Part shown: in pieces, positions 13,492 through 60,560 of the stretch
Numbering within the stretch: the first letter of the stretch is position 1
Layout: every line of letters begins with the position of its first letter
From: Neoechinorhynchus agilis
Taxonomy: Eukaryota; Animalia; Acanthocephala
Direction: 5' to 3'
Assembly (NCBI GenBank): GCA_051530055.1
Contig: CM121342.1
Location: 12,663,480-12,727,479, forward strand
Length of the DNA stretch: 64,000 bases
Notes under the pieces: generated by a model
The model's database searches: none
What the model was told of the DNA's origin: nothing
What the model saw: the letters and a program-made list of their open reading frames with translations, nothing else
Position numbers and translations under genes: made by a program

Positions 13492-14897
13492 TCACACAGC
13501 GTAATATGTATCCATGCCAATCGTGGTCTTTATGTTCATCATTCTGCTAATATCATCATCATCATAAATTCCAAGTTGGATTCCGACCCTCCTGCATTTT
13601 GCCCTAACCTCTTCTTCGACCAGATTAAAGCACATTACGAGGAGTGAGAGTCCAATCATGAGATATATCGCACACAGGACTAATTTTCCCTCAACTGCTG
13701 ATTTTGTATTGATCTCATCGACATCATTCACGCCATCAACAGTTTCTGAGTTTGTAATAGGACTCAGTGAACGACCAGGAACGAAATCACCTAGTCCGAT
13801 CGTCGTTAGAGTGATAAAGGAGAAGTAGAATCCGTCCAGTAGCGACCAATTTTCCCATTGAGAAAAAAGGAATGCCCCGACGAAGATATAGCCAATTAGG
13901 ACAGATGTTCTCCATAAGATATGAAGAATTTCTGCATTAGAAGAAGCATTGTGACGGATATTGGCACGGAAACAGTTTGGACATCATGAGGTCTTTCATC
14001 GGACGATTCAAAAGCACTTAAGGGAACATTATAAGCAGCACTAGGATATTGCCGTTGAGCATCCGCAAAGCTCCTCTGCATCCAACGTCGCCTTCTTCGT
14101 TGTGAAACCATGCGACAATATGCACAGCATATCCGAGAATAGATAAATCGAAATGAATCGGCCATTGTTGAGCCGATATTCGCCAGAAAGATTAAGAACA
14201 GCGGAATCCCACATGAAGCATAAAAGATCGTTAAGACCCGTCCGGCTGTCGTTTTGCACGTTATATTGCCATACCCTAAATTGAAGGGTTAAGGGTGTCG
14301 GTGATATCAATATCTATCGATAGGGCGGCTATCGCAGCGCAGAAGATCGTTAATCATTAGGATCAGGTCTTATCTTAAGACAACCGCTGACATATGGGTC
14401 TCGGGGCACCTAGTACCACCCACCAATTACCCACCTATTGATGTAATAACGGTTACGGCATACAAAACAGCCCCAGCAGTGTTCCATTGCTCGTTCATGG
14501 TTGTTGATTTCGAACCTCTTCTGCCACTCATTTCGAACTCATGTTTAGATCCTAAATATCCTCTTTGTTTCACTGCTCTTATGATTCCATCTTGATATTT
14601 CAAAATCTCTTCCCTTGCCATTGCCGTCCAATTCCTTTCTATCAAAACGAGATATTTGTTTGACTGGGTTAATAATTGTTGAACGACGGCGTCCAAGCTC
14701 TGTTGAACTTTAGCAAGATCATGTCGCTCAATAGGAGACTCGATTGACTTAAAAATGAAACCACCACCGATCGAGTATGCAATCACGATTAAACATAGTC
14801 CGATTCGAGAGAAAAAGAAGGTTGTAAACGAGCAACACATTTTGGAATAAACAGGATTGATTTTTTTAACTGGTCTATCGATCTCTTCATCGGGCAT
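13492..14897 (-). CDS. Two-pore-domain (K2P/TWiK-family) potassium channel
   Basis: Two pore loops, TVITSIG|YGN (GT-AG intron 14276-14434) and FITLTTIGLGDFVPG; four TM segments. M3 is interrupted by a 41-nt non-GT-AG hairpin segment at about 13895-13940. Confidence 0.92.
13895..13940 (-). other. Non-canonical 41-nt hairpin interruption in K+ channel M3
   Basis: Hairpin GCAGA-AA-TTCTTCATA/TCT/TATGGAGAA-CA-TCTGT between CTAAT direct repeats; removal gives VPISVTMLLLIGYIFVGAFLF. Confidence 0.8.
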
Positions 14898-17800
14898 AAC
14901 GTGATAAAATTCTGTTTATTTTGAACAAAAATGAGTAAGATATGTGTGATTGTAGTCTGAACGAAGATGATGGTGGTGGTCGATACTGCCAAAATATTTG
15001 ATATTCTTCACTGACAAGGCACTCTTAAGACGGAAATAGATGGCATCTCTCAAGACGCTCCCCAATTATTTCCGCAATGCCTCCAGGAATAAAGAAACTG
15101 ATCGCAGACAGCTGTCAGGGCAAGATGTGGCACTACTCCGAGCACTAGAAGTTTCATTCTTCCTTTTTACCTCGGTTGAATAAGTTCACAGCACAAAGGC
15201 TTCCGCCAAAAATCTTTAATTAAATTCAAAAGAGTACAGACGCAAGGAGACGATGGCAATATTAAAAGCTTCAAACAATGATGGGAATGACTAACTGGCA
15301 TCTCTGTCTGCCGTTTGCTATCCCCACGAAGAATGATAATATAATGGAATGTGTAGGATGCAAAAAGGAGTCACAAAGTAGTGAATTTCGTTTAACACTG
15401 GAGACGCACACAAATAATAAGTAACTTAAACAGGCACAGATTAAAGAACCTTCGATCGCTAAAATTAAATAAATCGTTCTTGTCCGTTTTTGATAAATGG
15501 ATATTAGGCACAGAAAACGCCTAAAGATAACATGCACTTTTAGTTGTGAAAACGAGATATTCTCGGCAAGATAAAAATTATCGTAAGAGAATCTGAATTC
15601 AGCACGCCGACGTTGATTCTAAATGGCTAAAATAACTAGGACTATCTCCAAAATTTCAATCAACAACATTTTAATAAAGGAAGCGCTACCTCAATGTTTT
15701 CAAATTTCTTATGCTCAATTAAAGTATCAATCTTTTGTTGTGGACATTTTTAATGTGGAATTCTCAAAAGTATAGCCGAGATAATTAAACAGCTATTTAT
15801 GTATTCAATAATCGATCAACAGTAAATGTTTCTCCTTCGCTTTCTGCCCTTTCAAAGATCATTATTAAATACCTTTGCTTCCAGAAGAGAAGCCACCTTT
15901 TTGCTGCATCGATTGACATTTAACCTATCAATTCCAGCAACTCCTTAAATGCTGTTTCCTGTCAGTTTCCTTGCCCCTATCCGTCTTTGTCAACCATCCA
16001 ATAAGGTTACTTTACAGGTGCGGTTTAGCCTAATCCATCACAGCGATGCTTATCAACAAATAACAATTCGCTTTTATACCACCATCAGGTGCGATTCTAG
16101 TTTCGCAATTTGTGAGTTTATTAAAAAAATTATTGAGAAACTAACTCTATTCTAAAAAGGAATGGTTCCCTTTTAATTTTGCAAGCGAACTTCGATCGAA
16201 TCCCAAAAATGTATTTTCTGAATAGTAAAACAATTAATACGATCTTTAAGGGTCCAAAATCTCAATATTGCATGTTCAAAGAAGTGTCAATAATTTGAAC
16301 TTCTTCCCATTGTCGCTTTAAAAAACCCATCAATTTTGTTTGATTTTTGCAATAAAGATTGCGTTAGATTTTTTCTTTTTGAATCCAAAATTATTTAGTT
16401 AAAAATTTTAATGCGTAACTCTTAAGAATCAATTTCTTACAAAAAGGTAAAAATGCTGCAATTATTTCCATGAAGATTCCACAATTATCGTCATAGACAG
16501 TTCGACAACGCCTCCATTTTAAAACTATGGATTGATATTATCTATCTGAGAGGTCTTAACTCAGCTACGCTTCATTCTTTCATTTTTAATTGAATTTCGT
16601 GCATTTACAATACATATTTGCTCCCCGAACAAGCGATGCTTCGTCAGATCGCGATTCATCTTCTCAGTCAGTAAATTCAGTTGCATCATATGACTTTGCT
16701 GACTAGTGTACATGATGTAAGAGATATTATAAATGGTAAGTTAGGTGCCAGGATAAGCAGTCTTAATTTATCCATGTCTCACAAAATGCTCGATAGGTTT
16801 ACTTTATATTCCGTTTCCGTTGTGAATTCATTTTCACAAGTCAACTCTATCTTCTAGGAATGGTTGAAATTGAGTTTCCAAAGCAAGAAATTTAAACGAA
16901 GCTTTTTGTAAGGCTTGGAAGTGCTCTGATGAGATCATTTCTCTTTAAAAATGTTTAAATCTCTCATTCTTCACTCACGAGATTTCATGTCAAAAATTCA
17001 ATCCTCATTTTCGCTTTCCCTAACCGCTAAAAAATCTTTTTAGGGATTCCAAATGATTAAGTAATCAACCTCAAGACATCGTTCGCTCAGCCTTATTGCG
17101 GTTTAAAAATAATGCTTAAAGTTCGGACTAATCCATTGACATTATCCGCTGCAAAGAAATCATATTTTTCGTAGCATAAATATTCAAGATTTTCCAATGG
17201 TTAAGGAACGGTTTTTATACGTCAATATATAAATGAAAATAAATATCCCGTTTCTCAGCGGTTTTATGCCTACCGCCCTTCGAGAAAAATTCGGTTAGTG
17301 TAACAGTTTCCGTGTGTCACTGATTGGGATCACTTTCTGCTTTAATGTCTACTTTTATACTTACTTCCAATGTTTTTCGTAAGTTACATTTTGCACTGGT
17401 TTAATTTTTATCAAAATACGCATACCTTTTTATTTATACCATCCTAAATAAGTTTAGCAATTATTCTACATGAAAAATTCGTGATTCAGAACTTGCATTG
17501 CACTTTGAATCCAATAGTTTTTCATTCAATTGATCCACTTACTACCAATAAAGACTCAAAGGCTTTGTAAGTGCGCATGCATCATCTCTCAGTACAAGTT
17601 TTAAATTCACTAGCTTCAAGTTGTTCTTAGTTCGATCAATTATTATTGCTTAAAATTGTCTACCACGATAAATTATTCAAATATGGATCTAATTTCAACT
17701 TGGGTTTGTAGAATAGATTGCAGGCGAGCAGATAGGGGCGAGGATCGGGATGCTTGATGGCGGTACTGATAGAAATTGGGTTTCTTTTTAAGAAGGGAAC

Positions 17801-20683: not shown

Positions 20684-21648
20684 ATGTATTGGCGTTCATG
20701 GAGAGCCTTACGCTCATCTGGAGCAGCTGGGAACGATCATAGATCCCGGCAAGTTCAACCAACGACAGCTCCTTTAACAAAATTCGTCCTATTTACCTCC
20801 AATTGCTTGTTTTGGATTATTAGTATATGTCTCCTTGTATCCGGCCTTTATGCATGGATAAAAAAGGGAACCCTCTATAACATGGGTCGCCTAGTTAGTG
20901 ATCGAACTCTTTTTTTCGATCCTGCTTGGTTTTTGATTATAATGAGCACAGTAACGGCTTTGGTAACATTGATCGGGTGTGTAGGTGTTCTTCGTGAAAA
21001 CAGCCAGTTTCTTTTGGTTTACATTTGGCTAGTATCGATTGCTTTCACGGCCGAAGTGTTGACCATAGCATTGGGTTATTTATTTAAGAATGAGGCCAAG
21101 AAGCACGTCGGAAGTGGAATGATGGAGTCGCTTAGCACATTAGTTCTCATGTTCTAAGAGTCCACGAAGAGAATTACTGTCTCAAAAAGTATCATGATGA
21201 CGAAGATCTTCAAGATCTAGTCGATTGGGTTCAAGCTAGTTGGCTTAAATGCTGTGGCGTCCAAAGCTACAGGGATTGGGAGATCAATGCATACTACAAC
21301 TGCTCATCCGCAGTTCTAGGGAACGTTATGGCGTGCGGGGTTCCACATAGTTGCTGTCGACTTAATGGAACTGAGACCACCGTGGTCGTAAACCGACAAT
21401 GCGGATTCGGTAAACTCCATGAACCGGTCGCCCAGAAATTGAACTTATCAATCTACATTGAAGGATGTCTTAACAAACTTAGTCAATGGTTCGAAGATCG
21501 AGCCGTTCTTCTTATGTGTCTTGCATTGGTAATTGCGGTAATTCAGCTGATCGGCATTGGATTTGCTTATTCTTTAAGAAGTAAAATAGGTGAACAGAGG
21601 AGAAGACATTTGTTGCGAAATCGAAGGTTCGGTAATGAGAATAACTAA
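20684..21648 (+). CDS. Tetraspanin, TspanC8 subgroup (TSPAN5/14/17/33-like)
   Basis: KFVLFTSNCLFW, GCVGVLREN, YHDDEDLQDLVDWVQASWLKCCG, DWEINAYYNC, GVPHSCC, EGC. One 50-nt interruption at 21131-21180. Confidence 0.92.
21131..21180 (+). other. Non-canonical 50-nt hairpin interruption in tetraspanin
   Basis: Arms ACATTAGTTCTC (21137-21148) and GAGAATTACTGT (21169-21180); in-frame TAA at 21155. Removal gives GSGMMESLKKYHDDED. Confidence 0.72.
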
Positions 21649-22329
21649 CAAGAAAATGGAAGATAATATGCGTCCGAGTGAGATTGATAGAACCTGACTT
21701 CATAAAGACAGCTTGATACTGTTTACGAGTGCTAGAACCCGTGACAAAATGAGCGGGTTTACGGTCCCAAAAATGGAATTCGCCAAGATCAGTCATAGTA
21801 CATAGTTAGCTATTATTTCATTTTAAATTCATGTCTTAGAGCCTTTCGAAATGCGTCTCTTTTCGCATTAAGCGATCCAATATTTTTTGAATGGATCCGC
21901 TGTGTTTGATTTTTGTATACTGCAAATATATGCTTCGATTTATAATTTTGAGGGCGTATGGTGTAACACTATCGAGGAATTGTAACTCGAAGATATGCCT
22001 GAAAAATATGAATCGATTTGCAAATAAATCGAACAACGCTTATCTGATATTTGGATGCTGTAAAGAAGTTTATGAATATATTTTGTATTGTGATTGAACA
22101 AATAAAGGTTAGTTGTAATAATTCAATATTTCGTCCGCCTCCTCGGACTTTTTCAGGTCTAAAGCTTGCTCAGGGTGGCTTTATTCTCAGTTTTAGCCTG
22201 TAACCTGACTTATCTGGCTGAAATGTGTCACGATAGGGAGAGATTTATTCGAAAAGTAAGGACGTGATATGGGCTTGCATAACTAGTTGTTGGTGATTAG
22301 CTATAGTCTTGCTAATTATTGTTTTCCTT

Positions 22330-25200
22330 TCAATGTCCAATCCATACATTTCTTCTGTCGGCCCAATCGAAGGTATGCGCCCAAGCGTTAGGAAGATTTT
22401 TTAGAGCAATAAGGAAGGAGCTTTGGAACTTGATCCACTGTTCTGGCGGACTCTTCCGTGAACGCCCAGGCATTCCATACCGTCAAAATAGCTTTGTTGT
22501 TCAGACCTAGGCGGCACGCTCGCCTTGCTTTGGCGCCAGCAGTTTTTACGAAGCGTTTAAGTTTCATTAGATCGGGATAAGTGAGAAATTAGCGGTGAAA
22601 GTATATTTCAGGACTGTGAGCATCCTTGTCGAAAAACTTATAGAACGCCTCCTTTAAAGCAGATTGCTTAATGACAGAACTGGATTCGATTGACATTTGC
22701 GATTAAAATGGAGTAAGATCTAGTCCCATAAGAGCCAGCATTTCTTATAAAAAGGACAAAAGCGCGAGCGCCCTACTTGACGAATGTCGTAAGTTCATCT
22801 GCATATAGAGAAATATTCTTGCAAACATTGCGATTTTGAACTATATATTGCGTTGCCAAGCAGAAAAAGATAGGAGACAGGTAAGTTTTAGGGAACTCCT
22901 TTGGGCTGGAAAGAGGTTGTATGAAGGGGGTCGACTTGGAAAAAAGACTGAAATCAGGGTATTATTAACGCGAACAATAATATTGTAGGGATAGTTAAAA
23001 TACTGAATTTTTTATAGTCAAATGCGATTAGAAGATTTGTATAGCACGGGTCGGAATAAAAATTATTGGCTATTTCCTGTACCGCGGAATGTACAGACTT
23101 GTTTGGTAAAAATCGTGGCATTGTGGGTCAATGCATTGATGCTCCAGTGCAAATTCCAAGATAAAACGGGCTAAAGTTCTCTCGTAAATGAAAACAAAGG
23201 AATTCTGGACGCTATTTTACTATGTTTGTTTTTAAGTAAGAAGATCCGCTTAGCTAAATTGATAGTGGCCCATTCTTGAGGAAGCGCCCCAGGCCATAAC
23301 GAGGAAACTAATGTTACTACTAGACAAAACATTAGTGGCCTTGAAAGAAGCCGAGGCATCATTCGTGGAGAATTTATTTTTCGAGTTCCAATGCCTGATA
23401 ATGTAATTGGGTGACAAATCTAGTCTCCGTCGTTTAAGCGGCACATAGAAGTAAGGAGAAACACGGGAGCCAGCGGATTAGATGGTTGAAGCCTACAAAA
23501 TTTAAATTTTGACTTGCTCAAGTCAACCAGGAATTTACGTTTAACCGAACGACGTCCTCATTCTTTGTCGGGAACTAATAACTGCTACGATTGTAAGTGA
23601 ACTCATCTTAACTAAATTGCTAAGCGGAGCATGAATTACATTGAGAATGTTATAACAATAACACGTTTTATTGGATCAGGGAAAATACAAACCACCAAAC
23701 CATGCAATGCAGGTACATAATGAAACTTGAAGTGTGTAAGTTGCTGGTAGGGCGCTTTTCGTGCTTTACACCCGAGGTAAGTGGGAGAGGAGGTCAGTTT
23801 ATGTGCAAGAAAGGTCTTGCGCGAATTGAGAATGTGATATGCAAGAGAGTTTTGAAGGCGGGGGAAATCAGGATTGCATGCCTGGTATCCTTTATTCAAC
23901 TTTATTTGGAGCATTTTCAGAAAGGCGACATCCAAAGTGGGTCTCAGCTGGAAATGTGAATGGTTTACCTAGGAATAGTTGTAATCATGCGAGAGGAGAG
24001 TATATTAGTTAGAGAAAGCATAATCTCTGAAGGATTGGGGTGAAAAATAGATTTTCAGTGTGAAGAGAGATTACGCGAGACCAATTTTGTAAATGCGAAT
24101 ATGTGTTGATCTCTCTCAGCCCAGACCGTAAGGGGGAATGACCGTACACGTCGAGAAGGATTGAAGGAAGAGAGGATAATTGCGCAATGGTCTGAGGATG
24201 AGACTGGATGCAGTTTTATAGCATCATTGTATTTGTGAATCTTAGTAAAGATTTTGTCGAAATGTGCGGAGTGGCGGGTAGGAAATTTTACTAACTCGAC
24301 GAAGTCAAGGAGAGATAGTGATGTAGGAAGATTATTGAAATCACCAAGAATGATTAGATGCTCAAGACCAAGAGAGTGGAGATTTGCTATCATTGCATCA
24401 ATCTCCTGTGATGTCATTTGTAGATTGACTGAAGGAGGACGGTAGATACCGATAATGGTTAAAATTCGGCTGCCTGTGCGAAGTTTGAGAGAGAGAACGG
24501 TAAGGCACTGAGGAAGGTCGAACCGAATGAAAATGGAGACCACATTCTGCGCGTTTGTCTCTGTAAGTAGAAAGAAGTAATGCGATGTCGGAATTGAAGG
24601 AGTGCAGCCATGTTTCCACAATCACCAAAATGTCTGTGTTGGTGGCGGAGGCTAATAGCGAAAGATGATCTATCTTAGGCAACAGACTTTTTTTATGTTA
24701 GTGAAAAGAATGAAGAGAAATTTTTGCTTGAAAGAACTTAAAGGAGGTGGAAGAGTTCGATGGATAAGTTTCTGAGCGGCTCTTGAGTTCGCGGTAATGT
24801 TTGACTCTGCCAATGTACGGCATGGATTTTCCGTGGTATCCAAAAATTTACAGATGAGTTCTGATCGTAGATTTTGACTGGTGTTAAGTTATTGGAGGGG
24901 AGAGTAGACGGTTGTGAATAGGCGAATGATGGACGGAATTCACAGTTTGAAGTGAGGGGTGTGGTTATATTCGGTATGGTAGAGAGGAATTGACGAGCGA
25001 GGAGCTATTCTGAAGGAAAGAAGATGCGGTGTTTGGCATATGAAAGTAGACAAGGACGGGATTTTTTAGGGTTTTTGTTGGAGATGCGGTGGAAGGAGAC
25101 CGTGGAAGGGAGGAGAGCGAAGGATTCGGGAAAGAGTTGTGACAATCCAACAAATGATAAACCGTACGGTTGAGCAAACCGATTTCGTCGGCTGAGTTTG
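22330..25200 (-). mobile_element. Decayed LINE (L2/CR1-like) with APE endonuclease and degenerate RT
   Basis: DILVIVETWL, IIGIYRPPS, IILGDFN, PTRHSAHFDKIFT, SSDHC; the downstream RT is broken by stops and frameshifts. Boundaries approximate. Confidence 0.75.
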
Positions 25201-25217
25201 TACATTTCGTAGTTGTG

Positions 25218-31443: not shown

Positions 31444-31599
31444 ATCTTTAATTACTTGCGTGTGATATTGGGAAATAAAACTAACTGTTGTCCATCGCAC
31501 ATCGACCGAAAAAGGGATGACCGGTCCTTCCTTAAGAAAACTTCTGATGAGGACTAATCACCACGAGGATCAGGAGAATTATCCAAAAAGTGCATTATG

Positions 31600-39660: not shown

Positions 39661-40096
39661 CTACGAAATGTACAAGCTTCACCACTTCAGCATGGATAAG
39701 CTTTCTGATTTTTTTAGAATTTTTATATGTGGCTCAGCCGGTTTTCGGTGGACGGTGTGTCCATTCGGCCGTGCATGGAAAAAATTATCTATCAATACTA
39801 ACAAGTACTTTCAAAGTTTTCAATAGTCGTCAATGGGTTTCATAAGCGTGCGCTGGTGAGAATTATCATTTAGCATTTCTCAATCAGTATGGATTTTGTC
39901 AATTATATACCTTTTAATCATCAAGATAAAATACTTCGAGGTTTACATATTTTTTGAATTGATTGATATTTCACGAGGAACCTCGCTTCATCAGTCATTG
40001 TTTGTAAGTCTTTAGAAATTGAAGAGACTACAATGACTAATTAGGCTTCCTTGTTCGAAATATCTCAATTAGCTAACCAAAGGAGGATTATAATTT

Positions 40097-40606: not shown

Positions 40607-41900
40607 CTATTTATTAACAAGTTCAAGCATTTCTTGCTCAACGTGATGAAGTTCAGGAGCAACGATTATAAGACTGTGAAGTGGACCACCTAAACTAAAG
40701 TCTTGAGCCATATCCCAAAGTGTCTTCATCACAAATCTTTGCTCTGTTTGATTGCAAACTCGAAGTGCAGCTACACATAGCCAATCACATAATGATGATG
40801 ATGATGATTGCTGTATATCGATTTCAAGGATCTGTTTAGCAGCCTCCTGACAAGTCATGAAGCTGGTTGATCGATTTGCTTTAGCTGCAGTAATTCCTCT
40901 AATTTCAAATAAAAAAGTTGTCTTGTCGATAAACACTAACTTTGAAGGGACTATGGACCAATCAATTTCGTTCATCCTAATGTCTAAACAATCTCACAAA
41001 AAATGATTGGTCTCGTATATAGAACTCACCCAACAGACAAAGAGTGTGAAGTCCACTCTCTCGATTGCGCATTATTTTCGCCAGGAAACTATTCGGTTTC
41101 CAAGTTTCAGTCCATAGCGGAATGGAAACGGTTTCCCCAAATCTGTATAGCTGGAAAGTATGCTCCATGCGCAAAAGCTGCAATTTCTTTAAAGATACGA
41201 ACTTGAAGTCCACAACTTGCGATGGCGTTAATAATGGAGGCATTGTGCACCACTTCACATTTTACACACACTCTCAAGTGATCAATCTCGAATAAATTTT
41301 ATTAAAATAAGAAAATGTGTTGGTCGTGATTAAATTTGTTGTTTCAGCCTTCGCTCGGCATGGACCCCGACGAGGCGAAAATTTCTTTATTATAAAACGT
41401 TCTCAACCGGACGAAGACCAAAAGAACAGAAATAAAAATATTGAACAACGGTTGCCGCAAACGAAATTGACCACTATTGAGCGAGTATCTGAGCTTTTTG
41501 TGCTCTAAGAAAAAGGTCACAATGTGTCGTAGCAGCGAACGGATCTCCAACAACTAAAAATGAAACAGTACCATCTCCTCGAGCTTCGTTCAGGATGACA
41601 TCTACACATAAAAAACTCAACAAAAAAACTCACCTTAATGAATTACCTGAATTATGCTCGACCATTTCTCTATCTGCCACAATAACCCCTTTAACACCAT
41701 ATTCAGTTTCCTTTTAAATGGTCGTAAAACACGATGGACGATGTTGAATAAAAAGAAATTACAAGATCTGAGATCGAAAAGTTTGGCATTATGGACGTAT
41801 AAGCTTCCAGGAAGATTTTATCGCTCTTTTGGACATACTTGAGACCACGAACAGTTATGTCATCCGGGCAGCCTAATCCTAATCCAATGAAATAAAGCAT
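40607..41900 (-). CDS. DPH5: Diphthine methyl ester synthase
   Basis: [71 protein letters not shown]. Five GT-AG introns (41711-41762, 41602-41646, 41151-41202, 40984-41029, 40899-40940) plus one 223-nt non-canonical gap. Confidence 0.96.
41263..41488 (-). other. Non-canonical 223-nt interruption with terminal inverted repeats in DPH5
   Basis: Arms 41266-41290 and 41462-41488; in-frame TAG at 41474; no GT donor available. Removal gives LRAQKAQ(I/V)KCEVVHNAS. Confidence 0.82.
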
Positions 41901-42573: not shown

Positions 42574-43340
42574 GTGCAGAGCTATTTATTCAGTTTCATA
42601 TAATTATTTTTATCTTTTAGTTGGTTTCGAGTTCGTATATTGAAATTAGAAGATGAACGTGACTGTTTCTTTTTTGTGATAACTATTCGTTGTATTCTTT
42701 GGAGAAAGAGATTGTTTATCGATATGTATCCTAAAGTGATTTTTTCGAATTTTGCACCGATCGTTTGGCATCGACTGACGTGATTATTTTTAGTTAAGTA
42801 GTAAAAAGAGCGCGTTTTAGTTATGGTAGCAAATTATCGCTTTTGGATTTTTCTACTACTTTTAAAATGATTGAAGGTTTTCTCTTTTGTTAAACCATTA
42901 AATTTTATTTGTTGATTGAAATTTGAATCACGAATCTCAATATTTCTCATTGGCTCGAATGTAGATTCTTGTGATTTGCACGAAAACTCAGCTTTCTATT
43001 GGCTGGGGCATGTTTCAATCGTAATCTCATAGTTTAGTTGAGTATCAACTGAAAGTTCATCTAAGTAATTTTGGATTTATTTTTTAGACTAAACAGAATA
43101 CTGACTGGCCTTTTATTCAGTTTTAAGGGCCATTGTTGTGAAAGTGGATGATGGCAAAATATATTATTTTTTGTCTGAAATTTTAAACATCATTTGGATC
43201 ATTTATTTTGCAATAATCATTGACGAGGCACTTTACGAAAGACACAATTCTCTTGCGAATCCTAGGAGCGACAACATATTATTTGCTTTCGATTGTTCTT
43301 TCAAGCGATATTTATTCGCTCTTTTTGGTTACAATCAGAT

Positions 43341-43524
43341 TTATAGTTTCAGTTTTAATTAGCGACGTTTGATTCAGAAATAGATTTATCTTGAAAATTT
43401 TTCGGTCCTTTCGTTGTCTGCAAACAATTGGCTGGAGAAGGCCGACGAAAAGGCCGACGAAAAGGCCGAAAATTTTCAAGATAAATCTATTTCTGAATCC
43501 AACATCGCTAATTGAAACTATAAT
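43341..43524. mobile_element. MITE, same family as the lamin insertion
   Basis: Inverted arms TTATAGTTTC..TAGCGA..TCAGAAATAGATTTATCTTGAAAATTT / AAATTTTCAAGATAAATCTATTTCTGAA..TCGCTA..GAAACTATAA; shares GAAGGCC.ACGAAAAGGCCGAAAATTTTCAA with 57917-57950. Confidence 0.85.
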
Positions 43525-44295
43525 GAATAATTTCTTTACAATTCAAATTTATCTTTATACATGAACGTACGCCGTACATATCTTTTTGATGAATTAAATT
43601 CCAAATTGGTTTGTGTGTGCGTTTTATTACGCCTATAATTATTTTTTGTGCAGCTTTAACGATATATTAAAAATGACGGCATATAGTACGTATTCAAAGT
43701 CAAGAAAATATAAAAATTTCAAAAATATGCTATTTGCTTCTATGGTTAATAATCGTATTGGTATTTTTTACGTCATCTCATAGCATTTAAATTAGCTGGA
43801 TACAATTTGAATGCAAAATTTCAATCTAAAATTCTGCGTTACTCATTTTCGTAATGCGCATTGTAAAAAAGTTTTGCGATTGTGAGAATATCCAGTCGAA
43901 ATCATGTCTTTTATGTTGGGTGACCTTGGTAAGCTCCTTTTTTCCAAACTGTTCTCAAATTTGTTCTGATGGTCAAACAGACATTCTCATAGCTGCTTAT
44001 ATCCAGCGTAAAAAATTAAAAGAATTTATTGATCTCAATATTTCGGCGCACAATCTTTTTGTACGCGTTTATCAATGTTGTTTCGCGAGTTGACGTTGAA
44101 GCTCCGTACTTCCAAACAATTTTGAAGAAGTCCCACACGTAGAGAACGAAATATTGAATTACTTCGCCTTGTAAAAATGAACTAGGAAGGAGCTTACAAG
44201 TTTGTCTCGATACACGCATGGTTATGTTCTTCATATTTTAGTTGATTGGTCTTTTCGACATCTTCCTTTTTCGGCTTGACTTTATCATTCACTTT

Positions 44296-49082: not shown

Positions 49083-49230
49083 TTATTCATGTGAACTTCT
49101 TAACGTTGCCAGTATACTGGCAGCGTTCCCTCGCTGTATCGCAATTGCGATTCGTTGAGCGAGGAAATTTCTAGAGCGCGGTTCCCCCGTCATCCTTTTC
49201 GTCCTTCGTCCCAATTCGTCGAAAGAATTG
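49083..49230 (-). mobile_element. CRE-clade retrotransposon 3' fragment
   Basis: TGEPRSRNFLAQRIAIAIQRGNAASILATL. Confidence 0.75.
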
Positions 49231-50099: not shown

Positions 50100-51250
50100 C
50101 TAATTCGTTTCACCCTCCCATACCTCGCACCTCCCTATATCTACGCTCCTTTTTCCACGCTGCCCAAAATGAACCTGAGGAAAGTCCCAATTATTTCCGC
50201 TTTCCGTCCCAATTTTTCGCCGTCCGTCCCAATTACTTTCGCTTTCCGTCCCAGTTACTCTTGTTCTGACGCCTTCCTCTGCATCTACGATACGCTTGTG
50301 CGCCCCCCAATCATGTGCTTCCTTTGGCCTCCCAACCTGGCAACTCGCTTGGATTTCCTCTTTCCTCTCCAACCGCAAACAATATATTCAATGTGGAACT
50401 TCTTGCTCCTCTTCTCTACCCATATTTAAAGGGGTCCCCCAAGGCGCCGTACTTTCCCCTCTCCTCTTTGACATTTTTCTAAATGACCTTCATCCCCTCA
50501 CTCCCCCTACCAAATATTTTCTCTATGCCGATGACCTCACAGTCATTACCATCGCATCTCCGTCTATCTCCCTCTCCACTACCATGGACGAGCTCAACCA
50601 TCTAATTTCCTCGCTCTCCACCCTAAACCTCTCCCTAAATTTATTTAAATCTTTTGAGTTTGTCCCCCACATTTCCAAACGCAACCTTATCCCCGCGCCT
50701 CTCCCTCTCCCCATCCAACGCTCCTCTTCTCCCCGAATACTGGGCGTGATTTTACAAGAAAACCTTAAATACCCAAAACGCTTCACTACAAGATTCAGAG
50801 TCAACATTACAAAAAAATCAATCAATTTACAAAGCAAACCCTCGTCTTTACCTCCTCAAATTCCTATGGCGTCTCGGCGTTTCCCCTAAACACCTTGCCC
50901 ACTTTTATCTCTATGCCATCCTCCCTATCCTTACATACGCTTACCCCACTTTCCTCGCCCTTTCCGCCAATGCTCTCCATTCCCCCGAAACCTTGCACAA
51001 GAGAGCGGCGAGAATATGTGGGAATTCACTTCCTCCCCTCGACGCCCACCTCCACTCCATTTTCTCCAAAAACGCCCTCCCTCTCCTTCAACCCCCTCCA
51101 CAATTTTCTTCCCTCATCTCTAAATACTTGTCTCTAGTAAACACCCTTAACCCCCACCTTTTTCATCCCCTCTCGCTCGTACCACCCTCTACCAAAAATT
51201 TTTCTTCCCTCAAGCCCAATCTTCCCTTAATAACCGGAGAACAAGGAAAG
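50100..51250 (+). mobile_element. Decayed LINE RT fragment (L2/CR1-like)
   Basis: WISSFLSNRKQ, GVPQGAVLSPLLFDIFLNDL, YADDL, RILGVIL. Confidence 0.85.
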
Positions 51251-51480
51251 ACTCCTAATCTGCCATTCTCCGGTATAACTCCAAAGACAAATCCCACCTC
51301 CCTGCCTCAACATCCGACATCCAGACAACTTCAGTAAAGATAGATGCTGACAATTGTATGGATCGTTTTTCTAAATCAATAGAACGTGTTTATTTTAACC
51401 TCACAAGCTCTCCTGTAAAAAATATCCACCAGCCCGACCGCATATTCCCACCCGCCCTGACTCGTAATCCAATCCAAACG

Positions 51481-51960
51481 ATTTTTTAACAACTGAGTAC
51501 TTGGGTGTGGGCGGACAACCCATTAACATCTATAACCACCCTTTCCTTCTCTTCGTTATTTATGAATTTCTCCCCGAAAAGAGACTGAGCAGAAACTAAA
51601 ATAACCTTTTCGGCATTACATGCCATGTCCATATGCACACCTCTCCTATCATCCGGAGGATCATGGGGTTTGGATAATCCCAAAACACTAAAATCGACCG
51701 GAGCGCATTCTTCGACAAACAATTTTTTAACAACTGAGTACTTGGGTGGGGGCAGGCTATCCATTAACATCTATAACCACCCTTTTCTCTTCGTTATTTA
51801 TGAATTTCTCCACAAAAACAGAAGGTGTAGAAACTAAACTAACCTTATCCGCGTCGCATTTAATGTCCAAATCCGCACCTCCACTATCATCCGGAAGATC
51901 AGGGGGTTTGGATAATCCCAAAACATTAGAATCGACCGGAACTTTTTTACGCATAACCTC
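51481..51960. repeat. About 240-bp tandem duplication
   Basis: ATTTTTTAACAACTGAGTACTTGGGTG at 51481 and about 51722; minus-strand ORF fragments of unknown family. Confidence 0.8.
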
Positions 51961-52859
51961 ATCAAGTATCTAGTGAAACTTGTAAGCTTTGAGCGGGTCG
52001 TTTTCTTATTTTTCCATCGCAGCAGTACCAAAACATTAGCTGTTTGAAGATTGAATTGTTCATGTTGATTGTGCCGATATATTGGAATCAATAAATTCCT
52101 TTTATTTTTACGCCAGATGCAAACCCGCTCTTTCCTCCGCATCAATTCGCATTTGAAGGATTGAGCAGTAAAGAAGAAAGAGCGGAGATAAAGCGCTATG
52201 CAATTAGCTGAAGGATGGAAAATGTTGGGGCGACGTGAGTGTTGTAAGTGGTGGACATATAAAAGTATTTAAGATCTTTGGATGAAATTTGAAGGAGCCA
52301 AAGGCACCTAAAAAGATATTTTTAATAGAACCTTTATGTAACGAAATTGATAGATGATTGATAAAAGTATTTAAGATCTTTGGGTGAAATTTGAAGGAGC
52401 CGAAGGCTGTTTTGCTTGTGTAATATTTTCAGGAATGAAAGTTTGATCAAAAGAGTGATATAAAGTGATTCATTAGGCATTGCCACATAAAGATCAGCGA
52501 AAATGATAATAATAACATTTAAAAACTTACAAACAACAAAATCGGTCGAATTTTCCTCCGAAAATAACGCGCTTTTGGAAAACATTGCCTAAAAACTTAC
52601 AAGCACTGGAAAAGGTCAACTTGCAAGCAACGCTGATTTCACGTGCAATAACGGCTTATTGTAGCTTAACAAATACTTTTCAAAAGAAGCAAGTAATACC
52701 TCTAAATAAAACCCGAACGTACAAGCCAAAATCTACAAGCAATCGGCATGCCAACGATTCCACCGCCGTCCCCTCGCTCCACTCGAGACTTAACTATCTC
52801 AGCAAACCACCATTCGCCGCACGTCGCACCGCCCACGTCCGACGCTGCGCCTCAACGTG

Positions 52860-55650
52860 CCACCTGTTAATCACGCGGATCACGAGAGGACCGACGCTGC
52901 AAATTCACAAAATCAACTTTGGTCCAAACAACCTGTAGAGAGCAAGCGGCAAACGGAAATTTCAAGTACTCTGGGAGGTGAGGTCAATGCTGCCCGATAT
53001 CTGAGGGTCTCAACACATAATTGCCCGGTCTGTGACAAGCAGATCAAAATTACGAAAGGGGGAGAATTTTGGACTCACGGCCTAAGGGATTCCCGATGTG
53101 TTGGTTCCGGCCTTCTGCTAGCAAACTGTGCTCCTCAGCTCAATGAACCTCGTCAGAACATCCAAACCATCGTCTATTGCACCCCTTCGTTGCTGGAGAT
53201 CGTGCGCCTTTTGCCCCGAAACATCCTGAAGCAGATCCCGAAGGGCGCTCGATTTCAGGTAGCGAAGAGGTATTCAGCCCTGCTGAGCGACTGTCTCGAG
53301 ACAAATACCTAAATTTCTTGGACACGCCTTTTTGCATTCCCGAGACTGGTACTTTGTGCTGGAGTACCATCTGACGAATCCCCTGCTACCCTCATCAAAA
53401 GCCGAGTGTCCTCCTTCGACAACTCGTTTGGAGAGGTCATACGCAAAGATTGCGTTTTTAGGTAAGATTTCTCAAAGCCACCGAATCCGGGCCGAATTTC
53501 AACCCGTTCAATGACCCAGAGAGTGTCTTCTAAACTCGCCGATGGTGATGTGAGAGGCGCGATTCGCATTCTATCATCCACCAACGAATTCGCAAGAGAT
53601 GACGCGAAAACTCTCCAACTTCTCAGAGAGAAACATCCTCCACCCACTGTCATCTAGAATATTCGTAGATGATCCCCTCGTGCACCCCGTTAGAGTTTTC
53701 GATTGATGTAATTCTCGCAAGTGGGTCAGCACATGAACTCGACGGGCTTCGGCCTCAGCATCTAAAGGACATGATGTCCTTCTCCGTAGGCGATCCATCC
53801 CATGTTCTCCTGAATGCCTTGACTCGGTTAGTCGGCGTTTTCTCTGGAGACATCCTGTCCACCAAAGCGGTCGAATGGTTTTTTGGCGCTTCCCTCTGTG
53901 CTTTAGAAAAGAAGGACGGTGGGATTCGTCCCATCGCGATTGGCTCTACATTGAGACGATTAGCAGGGAAAGTGATTTCTAGGCGAGTCTCAGAAGGTGT
54001 TGTTGAAATTCTTCGTCCAGTTCAACTAGGTTGCTGCACACCTAGCCATATTCCACGCACTCCGTACTTTTGAGAACGCCATACCGTGTGTGATCCTGAA
54101 ATTATATTTCCGGAACGCCTTCAATTCCGCTAATCGCGACTCGCTCTTAAAAGCTGTCAGAGAAACCGCATCGGAGGCTTACGGGTATTTTAGAAAGGAG
54201 ACCCGTTAGGTCCCATTGGTTTCGCATGCGGAATTCAATGCATGGTACCTGGACGATGCTACGCTAGGAGGCGATCCCCAGATACTTCGTGACCTGGAGA
54301 AAATCAAGATGGGGACAAGCAATCTGAGCATAGAATTGAACACAGAAAAGTGCGAAATTCTATTCCGTAACATAGAGAGCGGCCCTGCAAAAAAAGAAAT
54401 ATAGCGCGACTTTGAAAATGTTGCACCCGGGATATAAATGATCGACTTAGACCGGCTTAAGCTTTTTAGCAGTTGCGTCTTTGATGGGAATGTAGAAAAC
54501 TAAATTAACAGCCTTCTAGCGAAATTATCGGTGCTTTGAGATAGGGTTTGTAAGCTTGGATCACACAAGGCTCTGTTCTTGATAAAGAACACCCTCTTCA
54601 TCCCCAACTTCCTTTATGTTCTACGCACTGCGCCGGTTTTCAAGCACATGGGTGAGCTTGGCAAGCTAGATAACAGATTGAAGGACTGTCTTGAGCAAGT
54701 TTTAAATGTCCAGCTGTCAGAAGAGGCATGGCGGCAAGCATCCTTGCCTGTATCTTCTGGCGGGTTGGGCATCCGGAAAACAGCAGTTATATCCCTGCCC
54801 GCATCTTTTGGACTCACATGAGGGAAGCAGAAGCGCAGTTCAGCGCATTTTGAAATCTAATTGTCATCTTGATAGGCATTTGAAGAGACCAACTCCGATC
54901 AGATACCTGTGAATGGCCAATAGCAATCTGTGTTGGATCGACCTCTCGTTGTCCGTGGGCAGTCTCCGCTAGAGAATCAGGTGATTGGTTGAACGCGGTC
55001 CCGCTGGCATCTGCGGGTACTCTCCTCTCCAGCGAGGCAGTACAGGTCGGAGTTTCAATGAGACAAGGACTACCGATGTGCCATTCCCCACCGTTGCCGC
55101 TACGGTGCAAATGTGGATTCATCGGGACGTCATGGTCTCATCTGTAGAAAATCAGCCGGCAGATTCGCACGACATGCCGAAATTAACATGGTGCTGAGCC
55201 GGGCACTTGTTACGGTACATGCCCCCAATATTTTGGAACCTGCCAACCTCTGTAGGGACGACGGGCGTAGATCTGATGGGGTGACCGCATTTGCGTGGCG
55301 GGAGGGTAAATGTTTCCTCTGGGAAGCCACTTGTGTCGATACACTTGCAGCCAGTAATCTCAAGTTCTCGGTGGTTCAAGCTGGAGGTGCAGCGAGCGCT
55401 GCGGAAGGATGGAAAACGGCAAAATACCTCAATTTAGCCCAGGCCCATGTGTTTGCACCTTTTGGGGTTGAGAACTACGGATCTCTTGGTAGCGAGGCTC
55501 TTTAACTTCTGAAGGATCTGAAGCGACGCCTTCAGGTTACAACCGGCGATGCAAGGTCAGGTCAATACTTGGTTCAAAATATCAGCATCGCCGCGTTGAG
55601 AGGCAACACTGCAAGCATTCGGACGACAATTGAGGACGAGGACGGCTAGG
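52860..55650 (+). mobile_element. Near-full-length, degenerate CRE-clade RLE non-LTR retrotransposon
   Basis: CPVC..H..C knuckle; DGLRPQHLK; KKDGGIRPIAIGSTLRRL; GDPLGP; WYLDDATL; LNTEKCE; GGLGIR; C-terminal CCHC and RLE (RHAEIN..RRSDG..WEATC..PFGVENYG..RGN). Many stops and frameshifts. Confidence 0.88.
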
Positions 55651-56099
55651 CATATAACAGTTTGTGAGCGAGCGCTAAAATAAATACATATCGATTGCAA
55701 AAAAAAACACGTTTATTGTTTAACAAACAAATATAGAGGATAGGACCCATGTACCTTTAGGTTCTCATAAGCACTCGAGTTAAGAGTTGTTCAAAAAAAT
55801 TCCCTATCAGCAATTACGTTGTACTTAAAAAGATTCAGAATTTAAATTGTGCATTCGTGGACCTCACGGATAGGTGATGTAACTCCTCAGACTGAAGAAT
55901 ACGACGCCGCGAGTTCGAACCTCCAGTCACAATGGGCGTTTCAACCTCATCCATTCGTAGATGACAAAACATGCCCTAAATCACTTAAAGGGAAGGCATT
56001 TTCTGCCGAATTGGTTTCTTGAATGCTAAATTCGGCAAGTGGGACCTTCTACACTAAACAATCTTCGAACAAGAATATGAAATCGATAAAGATTTTTGC

Positions 56100-56240
56100 A
56101 AACACTTAGGCCATATCCCAAAGTAGCAGGTGTATTCCTGCGACAAAATATCTCGCTCGCAATACAACGAGGCAATGCTGCTATCGCGATAGCGACAGCT
56201 GAAGAAGGAGAGAAACTCCAATTTTGCGGACGGTGGTGAT
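56100..56240 (+). mobile_element. CRE-clade retrotransposon 3' fragment
   Basis: AGVFLRQNISLAIQRGNAA..AEEGEKL, same subfamily as 62500-62744. Confidence 0.75.
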
Positions 56241-56736
56241 TACACGTTTTGTACTTTATTATGTTCTTAATATATATCCCAAAATTATCCATCAAGAGAA
56301 AATTCCTCAGGGTTATAAAGCTGGAGCCGTGGTGATCATAATCATAGTAGCGATCGAGAAATAGCTCTATTCCATGAAATATTTCCTATCCGAGATTACG
56401 ATCACCACATCACCACTGAAGGAATGTTGAAAAAAGAGCAGCGTTTGAAGCTTCGAACGTAAGGTTTGCGGCGTAACAAGGAAGAAAATACGAGTGCCAG
56501 GACGAGAAAATAGGATTACAGACGACAAAATGTATTACTGGGCTTTTTCGCGACTTTACTGTAGAGATTTCTAAAATTACTTCGGATGTACATTTCATCA
56601 CGTTCGTTTTAATACGCGATCGCTACATTGATTTAAGTTTGCTAAGCATTATTCTTGTTACATAGTATCAACTTTGTGTTCGTTAAACATTTTCTGAACT
56701 CTTTGCATTAGTTTGTGCCATATTTTATTTTTAAAG

Positions 56737-58666
56737 ATGAATCACGAAAAGTCTCGTTTGACTGAAAAACCTGTACAACGACAGCCTACTTTGAGGCTAT
56801 CATCATGGCACCAAGAGAAGGAAGTTCAGTTACAAGGCTTAAACGATCGCTTGGCTGTTTACATGAAGAAGGTAGCATTCCTAGAAGAGCAGAACGCCGC
56901 TTTTCGAGAGACTTTAAAGTCTTATCAAAACGAAACGGTCTCAGCGAAATCACAACTGCGAAAAATATACGACGATGAAAGATTAGTGCTACGATCATCA
57001 CTGGACGATCTTCATAGAGAAACTGCAAAACTAAAACTGGACAATGACCGCATTTGTGAGCAGTACGAGAAAGTAAAGAACAACGAACGCGAGAAAGACG
57101 TTTTGCTCGACGAAACAGACGAAAAAGTAACGGATGCGGAATTTCGACTGAATGAACTTCAAAGGAAATTCAATGAATGCGAAGTTCAATTGGCAACTGC
57201 GAGCGAGAAATGGAAAATAAGCGAGAATAAAATGACCGAATTGACCGTAGAACTCAATTCTTTGAAGGATGCGCTCGATCGTGAGATTGTAACGAACGTT
57301 GATCTCGCAAATCAAAACCTTTCCATAAAAGAGGAATACGAATTCTCTCAAATTGTATCAGATGCCGAAAGCTCAGCGGTTTCAAAGAGCGTTGTAGATG
57401 TAGAAACTTTAAGAGAAATAATTGTGAGACTAACGAAATCTCTTTAGTGCCACGCTGGTAATCTCACATTTGTTTAAAATAGAAAATATTATGAATGAGC
57501 GTGTGAACATGAGTTTTCAGGATCAGCTGAGCCGATTGCGGAATGAGAGTAAAGAGAAGCTGGAACTTTTAAGGCTCGATTCGGATCAGAAGACGGCGAT
57601 GAGACTGGGAAAGGAACGCGAGCGAGCAGACCGCGCCGCTGATTCGTTGCGAATTATTCAGGAAAATTACAAATTGGCAAAGTATCGATTAGGGGAAACA
57701 AAACGAGAAAAAGAATCTCAAGATCGCCGTCTCGGTAAGCTTTTATCCACAGTGTCAAAGTTGGAGCATCAGATCGGACAATTAGAAACAGCTAATAATT
57801 ATCGTAAAGAAATTAATCATTATTGTTTCAATTTCACTTAGCGATATTCACTCAGAAAATTGATTTATATTGAAAATTTTCGGCCAAAAACTTACAAACA
57901 TTGTAGATCTGACTGCAGAAGGCCAACGAAAAGGCCGAAAATTTTCAATATAAATCAATTTTCTGAGTGAATATCGCTAAGTGAAATTGAAACTAATAAT
58001 TATCATTCTTTGATACAGGAAAAGGAGATTGAAAGATTAAATATCGCAATCGCAGAGTTTCAGGCTAAATACGATGATCTTCTTCAGGTTAATATAACAC
58101 TCGATCGGGAGATTTGTACCTATAAGCAACTCATGGAAAGCGGAGAAGAACGATTGAAGATTGCTCGGAAAAGAACGTTCTCGGATGAAGATGAGGAGCA
58201 GTCGTATGTTTCGTTGGTTTCGTCTGTAAAGACCGAGGGTGCCATTGGGATCAGTAGTGCTTCCGAAGAGATGGTGAAAATCACAGGGAAATCGGATAAG
58301 CCTGTTTCTATTTCTGGATGGCAGCTGAAGTGGTTCGATACAACAGCAACAGACGAAGAACTTCTTGTTGCGTTCAAATTTCCACGAAATTCTACGATTG
58401 ACGGTGAACTTTGCGTGTATTCGTTCAACTCCGGTCCGCGAGGCGCCTTTCGTTTAAAACAAAGAAGCTGGCCGTGCAATGATAATCCGCACGTTTTGGT
58501 TTTAGAAAACGACAAGGGATCTGTGGTATCGAAACTAACAGTTTGTCATGCAAGCGAAGAATGCTTTGAGCCCGAAGTGAAAAAAGAACGGGATTATGGG
58601 ACGAACGAACAAAATGTTACTGGAATTATCAAAGAGAGCATCTTAATTTTGAGGGGAAATATATGA
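56737..58666 (+). CDS. Nuclear lamin (rod, NLS, lamin tail domain); C-terminus may extend to about 58742
   Basis: LQGLNDRLAVYMKKVAFLEEQN, LDREICTYKQLMESGEERL, NLS RKRT, tail ISGWQL..FKFP. Interruptions at about 57418-57520, 57816-58007 and possibly 58611-58709. Confidence 0.92.
57816..58007 (+). mobile_element. 186-nt MITE-like insertion in lamin coil 2 without GT-AG ends
   Basis: Perfect 61-bp inverted repeats 57825-57885 and 57933-57993; ATCATT direct repeats 57816-57821 and 58002-58007. Removal gives LETANNYRKEINHSLIQEKE. Confidence 0.85.
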
Positions 58667-58820
58667 TTTTTTCGAAATTTCCTGCTCATGCGATTTCATA
58701 ACATTTTTTAACTAGTTCACTGGGAAGATGTTTAGTTCTTGATGCCTCTTTTTCATCCTTTTTATCGCTCCTTTCCTATACATTTCAAAAACAATTTATC
58801 GTCTATTCATTTCCTCTGAG

Positions 58821-60560
58821 TCATGGGCATTTAAGGACTTTGACAGTATCTGTGTCCCCCAGTCCCATCCTGGCATTAAACACAACCACGACAGGGTCTC
58901 CACTTTCTAGAACTCCATTCCGTTTTGCTTCCTTAATTCCGAATTCTATTCGTTCCCTTGAGCCATCCAAAGTTGAATCGTCGTCAATGATCGTGGACGC
59001 TTGTTTATCGCATATAACCGCTGAAATTCCTGGTGGCTGAAAGCCACCCATTACCGCGGAGATGATTCCCCTGTGTAGTTTCAATTGTCGTGCGACGTGA
59101 TTTGACTGTGTCACCGCTACGATTACGGCTCGTGGTCTATATTTACTCAGCCGTATGGCACCGGCTCCTGTGCAAGTGCAGACTAATATCGAAGGTGCAA
59201 ACACTCTGAATGACGCTTCGACTGCAGCTATAGCGATTGCATCAGCCGGTTTCAGAGGAGGTTTTGCGAAGAATCTAAGGTCATCAAAAGCCTGTTTGTA
59301 AAATGTACAGGATTCTGCCTCACGTGCCACTTGGTGCATCAAGTATACAGCTTCAGAAGGGTATTTCCCTTTTGCAGTTTCTCCACTCAGCATTACACAA
59401 TCCACTCCATCCAAAATAGCATTGGCTGTTGTAGTCTGATCTAGGAATCAAGATGCAACCCTAAATTAAACTAAATTTACATCACTCACTTCAGCTCGCG
59501 TCGCCCTCGGATTACTTGTCATCGATTCGAGCATTTGCGTTGCACAAATTACCGGTTTACCAACCAGGTTACATTTGGCAACTATCATTTTCTGTGCCAC
59601 AAAAACCTTCTCCGCTGGAATTTCAATTCCTAAGTCACCTCTGGCTACCATAATACCGTCACTCATTGCAATGATCTGGTCGATGTTTTCAACGCCATCC
59701 ATACTTTCAATCTTTGCAATTACTTTGATGTTGGTTTGTCGACTTCCCGGGAGCAAGTACCTCGTGTATTGTTCCAAAAGCCTTCGGATCTCTACGATTT
59801 GTGCTGCGTTATTTATAAACGAGGCAAAAACAAAATCAAATTGGTTCTGAACAGCGAATCGTAAGTCATTCTTGTCTTTCTCACTTACAGGGGGTAGTTC
59901 CAGAGATGCGCCTGGTATATTAACTCCCTTTCTACTTGTTAATTCACCGCCTTCCTCAATTTTACAGTCGACGCCATCGTCGTATACTCTAACGACTCTA
60001 AGCCGCATCAAACCGTCGTTTATAAAAATCAACTGATTGGGCAGTACAGTCGTGGGCAATGCTTTATAGGTGACAAAAAGCACTTTTTCATCACTGTTTT
60101 GCTCGTACTTATTATTAACTGTCAAATAAATGCTTTCACCTTGTTTAAGCATCGTCGGTTTCCTAACTTCGCCCGTTCTAATTTCTGGTCCTTTTGTGTC
60201 CAATGCTAAAGCAATCGTTTGTGGCATGTGCAACTGTTTTAAAGCTTCCCTCAAATTCATAACACTCTCCGTATGATACTCATGACTTCCATGAGAGAAA
60301 TTAAACCTTGCTATGTCCATGCCCGCGATAATCAACTTCTTTAAGTCCTGAACGGAATGGGATGCAGGACCCAAAGTGGCTACTATACTCGTCTGGCGCC
60401 GAGTTATCTTTGAATCGAGTTTCAATTTTCGCTGATGATCCAAATTATTACTTGATTCGTATTCGTAGGTGATTTCCGATCTTAGAGTCGACATTCGTCT
60501 TCGCATCAGCGCCCTTTTAACTTGGGCGGGTAAATTCGTGTGGGTATTAGTGGTGCTCAT
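58821..60560 (-). CDS. PK: Pyruvate kinase
   Basis: [72 protein letters not shown]. One 51-nt gap at 59427-59478. Confidence 0.97.
59427..59478 (-). other. Non-canonical 51-nt hairpin interruption in pyruvate kinase
   Basis: Arms 59430-59445 and 59460-59475 with a 14-nt loop; contains in-frame TAA and TGA. Removal gives RAEVSDVANAILDG. Confidence 0.8.

Follow-up and report, generated by a model that had tools for sequence, protein, structure and literature searches.

Coding interruptions outside the GT-AG rule in the acanthocephalan Neoechinorhynchus agilis and their removal from pyruvate kinase and lamin transcripts

A stretch of 64,000 nucleotides (nt) from Neoechinorhynchus agilis (GenBank assembly GCA_051530055.1, contig CM121342.1, positions 12,663,480 to 12,727,479 of the forward strand; hereafter the window) carries genes for a K2P channel, a tetraspanin, DPH5, a lamin and pyruvate kinase (PK), whose coding sequences are interrupted by segments that depart from the GT-AG rule. 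A preliminary description, made from the sequence itself, had listed five such segments of 41, 50, 223, 186 and 51 nt, respectively, and proposed that this animal removes foldback inserts from essential genes, guided by structure, alongside normal spliceosomal introns. All five could be located and each was confirmed to contain a stop codon or to shift the frame, and the sizes hold with the exception of the lamin segment, which is 201 and not 186 nt long. What is new here is RNA-versus-DNA evidence for two junctions, one in PK and one at a 70-nt lamin insert (lamin-70) missing from the earlier list, along with the finding that the lamin foldback is a polymorphism. The window as a whole has a high AT content, densely packed genes and few introns; SAP18, a protein kinase with its entire catalytic domain and a YEATS protein are each encoded by one uninterrupted open reading frame (ORF).

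Public runs with matching sequence consist of many small RNA runs from one study together with whole-genome shotgun (WGS) and Hi-C runs, in agreement with the published N. agilis data set, which comprises poly-A RNA from 74 single worms and pooled-worm DNA with Hi-C scaffolding. Reads were tested on positions 56400-61400, which contain the lamin gene (plus strand) and the PK gene (minus strand), using two RNA runs (X2 and X10, poly-A RNA from single worms, compared as assembled contigs), DNA contigs (X1) and a raw WGS run (X8), the DNA coming from whole worms at a depth of about 10-35x. This comparison covered the lamin and PK sites, and the K2P, tetraspanin and DPH5 cases rest on homology and reading frame. 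Given that the RNA contigs show 0-5 mismatches to the window over 2.2-2.6 kb with flanks included, this locus, rather than a paralog, is their source. Hairpin z-scores refer to dinucleotide shuffles (200 for the inserts and GT-AG introns).

PK and lamin inserts in DNA and in RNA

The PK insert occupies 51 nt at 59427-59477 (minus strand) and interrupts an SDV|ANA motif (a bar marks a junction throughout). Both RNA runs contain the joint 59426|59478 at full local depth, carried by long RNA contigs (2278 and 2631 nt; each aligned piece has 0-4 mismatches). RNA depth falls by exactly 51/167 in the bin that holds the insert, and because this dip amounts to exactly 51 nt, no RNA contig keeps the insert. 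In DNA, X1 contig 4 is continuous over 57993-61051 with the insert included, and the joined form was found neither among the X1 contigs nor among the raw X8 reads (0 joints). Removal of the insert makes the Pfam profile PF00224 contiguous, with profile position 301 before the joint and 302 after it. On the gene strand the insert begins with AA and ends with CA, or with AC after a slide of one base, and no placement creates GT-AG ends; a consensus donor GAA|GTGAGT (59481-59486, minus strand) located 12 nt upstream of the insert stays in the mRNA unused. The hairpin formed by the insert has a z-score of -2.68.

The lamin-70 insert lies at 57410-57479 (plus strand), and the joint 57409|57480 is likewise present in both RNA runs at full local depth, with a dip in RNA depth of exactly the skipped length, indicating that no contig retains the insert. 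No joined form was detected in X1 DNA contigs or X8 raw WGS reads. The reading frame needs the removal of these 70 nt, after which the lamin ORF is continuous. Sliding over 2 nt allows the ends UA..AA, AA..AU or AG..UA but no GT-AG placement, and the hairpin has a z-score of -2.95. At neither site are U2-type GT-AG or GC-AG ends, or U12-type AT-AC ends, available at any placement compatible with the mRNA. Both inserts are efficiently removed at the RNA level through a single junction for which GT-AG splicing is impossible, and because they are in DNA and not in mRNA, with one exact junction, they are introns in the operational sense.

An intact paralog as the source of the joined RNA was considered for both sites and rejected, the joined form being absent from both DNA sets. 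The same absence bears on somatic DNA excision, in which programmed elimination comparable to that of ciliate internal eliminated sequences (IES), one of the precedents invoked by the preliminary description, would provide a processed copy for transcription. Adult acanthocephalans contain much germline and embryonic DNA, and given this a small somatic deleted fraction could escape reads of this depth. However, the X1 contigs and X8 raw reads, albeit from whole-worm DNA at modest depth, hold no joined DNA at either site, and PK, lamin and DPH5 are housekeeping genes also needed by germline cells, which keep the inserts. An IES-like precedent is excluded at PK and lamin-70 by DNA that lacks the joined form, and we regard somatic excision as very improbable. 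Another of these precedents, T4 gene 60-like ribosomal bypassing, would have the inserts stay in mRNA and be crossed by bypass or frameshift. It is refuted at both sites by mRNA without the segments, while assembly artefacts are contradicted by the presence of both inserts in independent DNA sets from different samples (X1 contigs and X8 raw reads), such that explanations of this sort can practically be set aside.

Bulge-helix-bulge geometry, as used by tRNA endonuclease, was also considered for PK and rejected, since on inspection the required pairing between the start of the intron and the start of the next exon was absent. The lamin and PK genes are convergent around 58543-58904. The X2 RNA contig of 2278 nt spans the end of lamin and PK with the 51-nt skip as its sole gap, and the existence of one contig across both indicates that the 3' untranslated regions of the two genes abut or overlap.

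The lamin foldback and unmatched RNA leaders

The 201-nt foldback in lamin coil 2 (57792-57992, plus strand), which the preliminary description had counted among its candidate introns, is a segregating insertion of a MITE (miniature inverted-repeat transposable element), and the transcripts seen stem from the empty allele. Its 201 nt count one copy of a 12-nt direct repeat, CTAATAATTATC, with the joint running from 57791 to 57993, and its arms (57825-57885 and 57933-57993) are perfect over 61 bp, giving a z-score of -19. The empty, joined form was found in DNA as well as in RNA: depths among the X1 contigs were 145 for the empty form (contig 4) versus 88 for the filled form, and 14 raw X8 reads with 13 start points carry the empty form. 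In addition, the RNA shows, at full depth, the three single-nucleotide polymorphisms (SNPs; positions 57748, 57759 and 57775) that mark the empty haplotype. Because the empty form exists in DNA and the RNA bears empty-haplotype SNPs, the foldback is a haplotype-specific insertion, an outcome that the preliminary description had itself named as speaking against an intron. The filled allele amounts to about 26-38 % (X8 SNP counts, X1 contig depths), and the assembly displays this minority allele.

X8 depth across the MITE is 240-700 versus about 15-35 in the flanking bins, indicating a high-copy family, of which the lamin copy is a young, polymorphic member. A diverged intergenic relative at 43320-43570 (no strand assigned) gives the outer end of the family, GTAAAGAAAT. 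The lamin copy (57792-58016) has a complete left end of 82 nt (GTAAAG...) and a right end short of the last 21 nt of the family; the flanking 12-nt direct repeat is unusually long, and, judged by eye, the lamin exon just 3' of the MITE (TAATAATTATCATTCTTTGATAC) agrees with the missing MITE end at some 17 of 21 positions. An unusual insertion mechanism and an older MITE remnant used as coding sequence are candidate explanations for these odd ends. The lamin C-terminus (58600-58666) reads ...LILRGNI and has no CaaX box, as is reportedly the case in every lamin of rotifers and acanthocephalans. Two lamins are present in Pomphorhynchus; if N. agilis likewise had a second one, it could buffer the effect of the MITE allele.

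Conventional acceptor sites are in use in the same region. A canonical polyT-AG acceptor is located directly 5' of the lamin ATG (56725-56737, plus strand), and the RNA leader joined at its loose end, position 56737, is not encoded by the genome at that place. For lamin and for a gene that starts at 61001 (plus strand), the RNA contigs begin exactly after polyT-AG acceptors, and the unmatched leaders at 56737 and 61001 end with AAAACTTACAAGCA and AAAACTTGCAAACA, respectively. These leaders look like products of spliced-leader (SL) trans-splicing, a process known in bdelloid rotifers; no literature report of it in acanthocephalans was found. The use of polyT-AG acceptors, along with the good GT-AG introns of DPH5 and K2P, indicates that a working spliceosome is present.

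A 14-nt leader motif has six occurrences in the window versus 0.31 expected (39999-40012, 52522-52535, 52592-52605, 57887-57900, 62494-62507 and 62821-62834). The MITE loop (57886-57948) contains this motif together with a GGCC-N8-GGCC stem-loop and an Sm-like site, AAUUUUC; approximately 1800 X8 reads per strand have 57900-57948 in common and then diverge into other well-conserved flanks, and RNA contigs also include this unit. An abundant small-RNA gene, which could be that of the SL RNA, may be a relative of the lamin MITE. Rfam and tRNA scans of the window returned no matches. Decayed pieces of non-LTR retrotransposons with reverse-transcriptase and endonuclease domains were seen at 50300-55500 and around 24000-24600, overlapping strong GC-skew blocks at 50-52 kb and 24-26 kb.

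Inserts in the K2P, tetraspanin and DPH5 genes

The 41-nt K2P insert (13895-13935, minus strand) interrupts helix M3 and shifts the frame, and the piece downstream of it begins at TASK-3 residue 170. It is flanked by CTAAT direct repeats that allow six possible placements, its junction and size being set by the reading frame alone. A CAG...CUG closing stem places 35 of its 41 nt in a stable hairpin (z -4.69). The same gene carries a GT-AG intron of 159 nt (14276-14434, minus strand) whose removal restores the TSIGYG selectivity filter.

The tetraspanin-5-like insert spans 50 nt (21131-21180, plus strand) in the large extracellular loop, and a placement at 21134-21183 is equally possible with the protein unchanged. 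Without the 50 nt, the protein aligns gaplessly with seven tetraspanin-5-like homologs through MMES|LKKYHDDEDLQDL, and Pfam profile positions on either side of the insert are nearly contiguous. Its hairpin is not above chance (z -0.41). A word-indexed protein search with the C-terminal piece returned homologs of at most 44 % identity only, and no transcript-derived protein of its own.

The DPH5 insert of 223 nt (41263-41485, minus strand) has imperfect terminal inverted repeats of about 25 nt, TA direct repeats and a terminal stem of 14+5 bp (z -2.86). Its removal makes residues 124 and 125 of the solved diphthine synthase structure (PDB 3i4t_A) contiguous, and the junction is free of indels versus seven of eight homologs, the eighth (P0123) being gapped just past the junction. 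Four ordinary GT-AG introns of 45-52 nt in this gene served as controls (41711-41762, 41602-41646, 41151-41202 and 40984-41029, together spanning 40984-41762 on the minus strand), and taking out these four along with the 223 nt results in a complete ORF of 291 amino acids. A full HMMER search with DPH5 exon 4 gave no self match, the top identity being 80 %; this search and the one for tetraspanin provided the homologs used in the alignments.

No usable GT-AG or GC-AG option was found at the K2P, tetraspanin and DPH5 inserts, where alternatives are absent, too short or out of frame, and the initial statement that such placements are unfit holds for all five listed segments. The accompanying statement, that exact removal restores conserved motifs, stands for PK on the Pfam profile and for tetraspanin and DPH5 on the alignments; at K2P it is the frame that defines the junction. 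Judged from these features, the K2P, tetraspanin and DPH5 inserts would have the same fate as PK and lamin-70 and be removed as introns. Alternatively, they could represent haplotype-specific insertions or lesions in decaying gene copies, which is exactly what the lamin foldback, one of the five, turned out to be at a place where the assembly carries the rarer allele. Against this, the three inserts look old, with imperfect stems; the ORFs flanking them are intact, with conserved motifs and zero-indel junctions, and the comparable small inserts of PK and lamin-70, fixed in X1 as well as X8 DNA, are cut from the RNA. A search for relatives within the window found none for the PK, lamin-70, K2P, DPH5 and tetraspanin inserts and one for the lamin MITE alone, and it is this lack of related copies that makes all five inserts look old. 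We therefore hold the explanation by allelic insertions or decaying copies to be improbable, and consider it likely that the inserts are RNA-level non-canonical introns, retained in DNA and cut from pre-mRNA at one exact junction that restores frame and motifs.

Junction structure and possible routes of removal

Hairpins exceed shuffles in four of the five inserts (K2P, lamin-70, DPH5 and PK). The contrast drawn at the outset between foldback inserts and GT-AG introns holds with exceptions: among the listed segments, hairpins above chance were seen in K2P, PK and DPH5 and in the lamin MITE with its perfect arms, but not in tetraspanin. Likewise, the claim that GT-AG introns of the same genes are without a terminal stem applies to the four DPH5 introns (z 0.01, -1.45, 0.01 and +0.84) but not to the K2P intron of 159 nt. 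Extending the sequence by 25 nt of flank per side leaves the K2P and DPH5 stems as the minimum-energy fold. Between stem and junction there are 4-6 unpaired nt per side in PK and lamin-70 and 3-4 in K2P, and the inferred DPH5 junction coincides with the very base of the stem; five cases do not allow a rule of fixed spacing between stem and junction, and the idea was rejected. A polypyrimidine tract is absent from the inserts.

By sliding, a U|A 5' junction and a Y|A 3' junction can be reached for all five inserts: U|AAAUU..ACAAC|A in PK, U|AAGAG..AAAAU|A in lamin-70, U|AAUGC..GUCCU|A in K2P, U|ACUCG..GUGUGU|A in DPH5 and, with the alternative 50-nt placement that yields the same protein, U|AGCAC..GUCUC|A in tetraspanin. 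The observation that each insert can be placed to start with A and end with C or T is confirmed for PK, K2P, DPH5 and tetraspanin and extends to the unlisted lamin-70. A U|A...Y|A context would be the expected trace of a TA target-site duplication whose second copy has at times mutated to CA, which suggests that the inserts descend from elements that have terminal inverted repeats and insert at TA.

A neurobeachin-like gene (556-585, minus strand) has an in-frame TGA at 573-575 between its BEACH and WD40 parts, which share the same frame, and this TGA lies in a mini-hairpin of about 27-30 nt, within the loop closed by its 7-bp stem. It may be a very small member of the class; evaluated as such, the mini-hairpin of 27-30 nt was unconvincing (z -1.41) and was rejected. 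The gene also has a normal GT-AG intron at around 3224-3274.

Several findings weigh against structure-bounded introns with a removal route of their own. Folding gives no significant hairpin for the tetraspanin insert; in PK and lamin-70 the hairpin ceases to be the minimum-energy fold if the flanks (25 nt per side) are folded along with it, and a closing stem of moderate strength (z -2.05) exists in the 159-nt GT-AG intron of K2P. In size, the short inserts (41-51 nt) match local GT-AG introns (45-52 nt). A single junction was seen per RNA run at PK and lamin-70; however, contigs drop rare variants, and the two junctions were compared with reads by way of contigs that hide minor isoforms and low-level retention. 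Finally, the closest published process in animals, discussed below, is imprecise in contrast to the one junction found here. Given the tetraspanin insert and the folding of PK and lamin-70 within their flanks, the original wording that removal is guided by structure goes further than these data. Removal of transcript segments beside normal splicing does hold for PK, which RNA skips and DNA keeps, and fails for the allelic lamin foldback.

One possible route is an ordinary U2-type spliceosome with permissive end recognition. In the larvacean Fritillaria borealis, more than 90 % of introns are non-canonical and are removed by the U2 spliceosome according to a YAY rule (Henriet et al. 2019; PMC13326754); introns of the AG/AC and AG/AT classes, derived from MITEs with terminal inverted repeats and target-site duplications, dominate there. 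Like Fritillaria, N. agilis is an animal with non-GT-AG ends, possible AC or AT 3' ends and failing GT-AG-based gene models. With regard to a transposon origin, TA or Y-A direct repeats and inverted ends are present at its inserts, but a family was seen for the polymorphic lamin MITE alone. PK can be placed as AA..AC and lamin-70 as AA..AU, similar to the Fritillaria 3' classes, and the intron-like size of the short inserts and the polyT-AG acceptors used by a functioning spliceosome also favor this route. By contrast, both sites lack the YAY triplets expected ahead of the 5' site and as the last intron bases: PK has GUA/UGU upstream and ACA/AAC as its last three nucleotides, and lamin-70 has CUU/UUU/UUA and AAA/AAU/AUA, respectively. 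The combination of an AG 5' end with an AC or AT 3' end was not found at either junction, and about half of the interruptions in the five genes are non-canonical compared with more than 90 % in Fritillaria. The lack of a polypyrimidine tract in the inserts, the perfect GTGAGT donor ignored in PK and the 35 nt of the K2P insert held in a stable hairpin further argue against a permissive spliceosome, which we see as a possible route with roughly one chance in three.

Nonconventional introns of euglenids have variable non-GT-AG ends and a stem joining these ends a few nt inside the junctions, and they leave as full-length circles of RNA once conventional splicing is over (PMC12501133, PMC3935182, PMC11282704). 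The inserts resemble them in their ends and stem, in slidable direct repeats, the missing polypyrimidine tract, a suspected MITE origin and the presence of GT-AG introns in the same genes. However, the euglenid code N3-CDG...CH'G-N5-6|R fits the K2P insert alone (N3-CAG...CUG-N5|A) and not PK (N4/5-UAG...CUA-N5/4) or lamin-70 (N4-6-AAA...UUU-N6-4), and euglenids are protists.

The closest animal precedent is SOS splicing (Zhao et al., Nature 2025, PMC12779559), by which C. elegans and human cells cut DNA transposons from their mRNA. This process relies on AKAP17A, CAAP1 and RTCB, the last of them a ligase, and not on the spliceosome; its trigger is paired inverted repeats, and it uses no GU-AG sites; as published, it is imprecise, generates many mostly out-of-frame isoforms and acts as a buffer on recent insertions (PMC12779559). 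As in SOS splicing, PK and lamin-70 leave the mRNA of an animal at non-GU-AG sites while staying in the DNA, and the targets of SOS splicing are exonic insertions of DNA transposons, among which Tc1/mariner elements insert at TA, as the flanks suggest here. Unlike SOS splicing, the events in N. agilis involve one exact in-frame junction and small, old, apparently fixed inserts in essential genes.

In a model built on this precedent, short to mid-size inserts, probably decayed TA-target MITEs with ends that usually pair with each other, would lie in coding exons; the paired ends would be recognized and followed by cleavage and ligation outside the spliceosome in an SOS-like manner (AKAP17A-CAAP1-RTCB), here precisely and constitutively. 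The lamin MITE would be the type of insertion from which such introns could arise: MITEs landing in exons of essential genes would segregate, as the lamin allele does at about 30 %, and then become fixed as introns without gaining splice signals. If the class is real, a non-spliceosomal, structure-triggered route would be a tentative first choice, at slightly below even chances, with what is left after it and the permissive spliceosome falling to some other route. That acanthocephalans have turned a hairpin-sensing, RtcB-type transposon excision into a precise and constitutive second intron-removal system is a more speculative proposal, and on present evidence an unlikely one.

Non-canonical introns of acanthocephalans or rotifers did not turn up in full-text literature searches, and the N. 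agilis papers and the Pomphorhynchus genome paper make no mention of introns. Gene finders based on GT-AG rules will break the PK, lamin, DPH5, K2P and tetraspanin models in this genome, and genome-based counts of conserved genes 'missing' from acanthocephalans call for a new check by mapping that ignores splice motifs. A natural test case is at hand in the polymorphic lamin MITE, for which 74 single-worm RNA libraries exist. After larvacean tunicates, acanthocephalans would be the second animal lineage with a large proportion of gene interruptions outside the GT-AG rule, here adjacent to GT-AG introns. Should removal be SOS-like, these introns would be the first fixed ones to rely on that route and would connect transposon buffering with the origin of introns.

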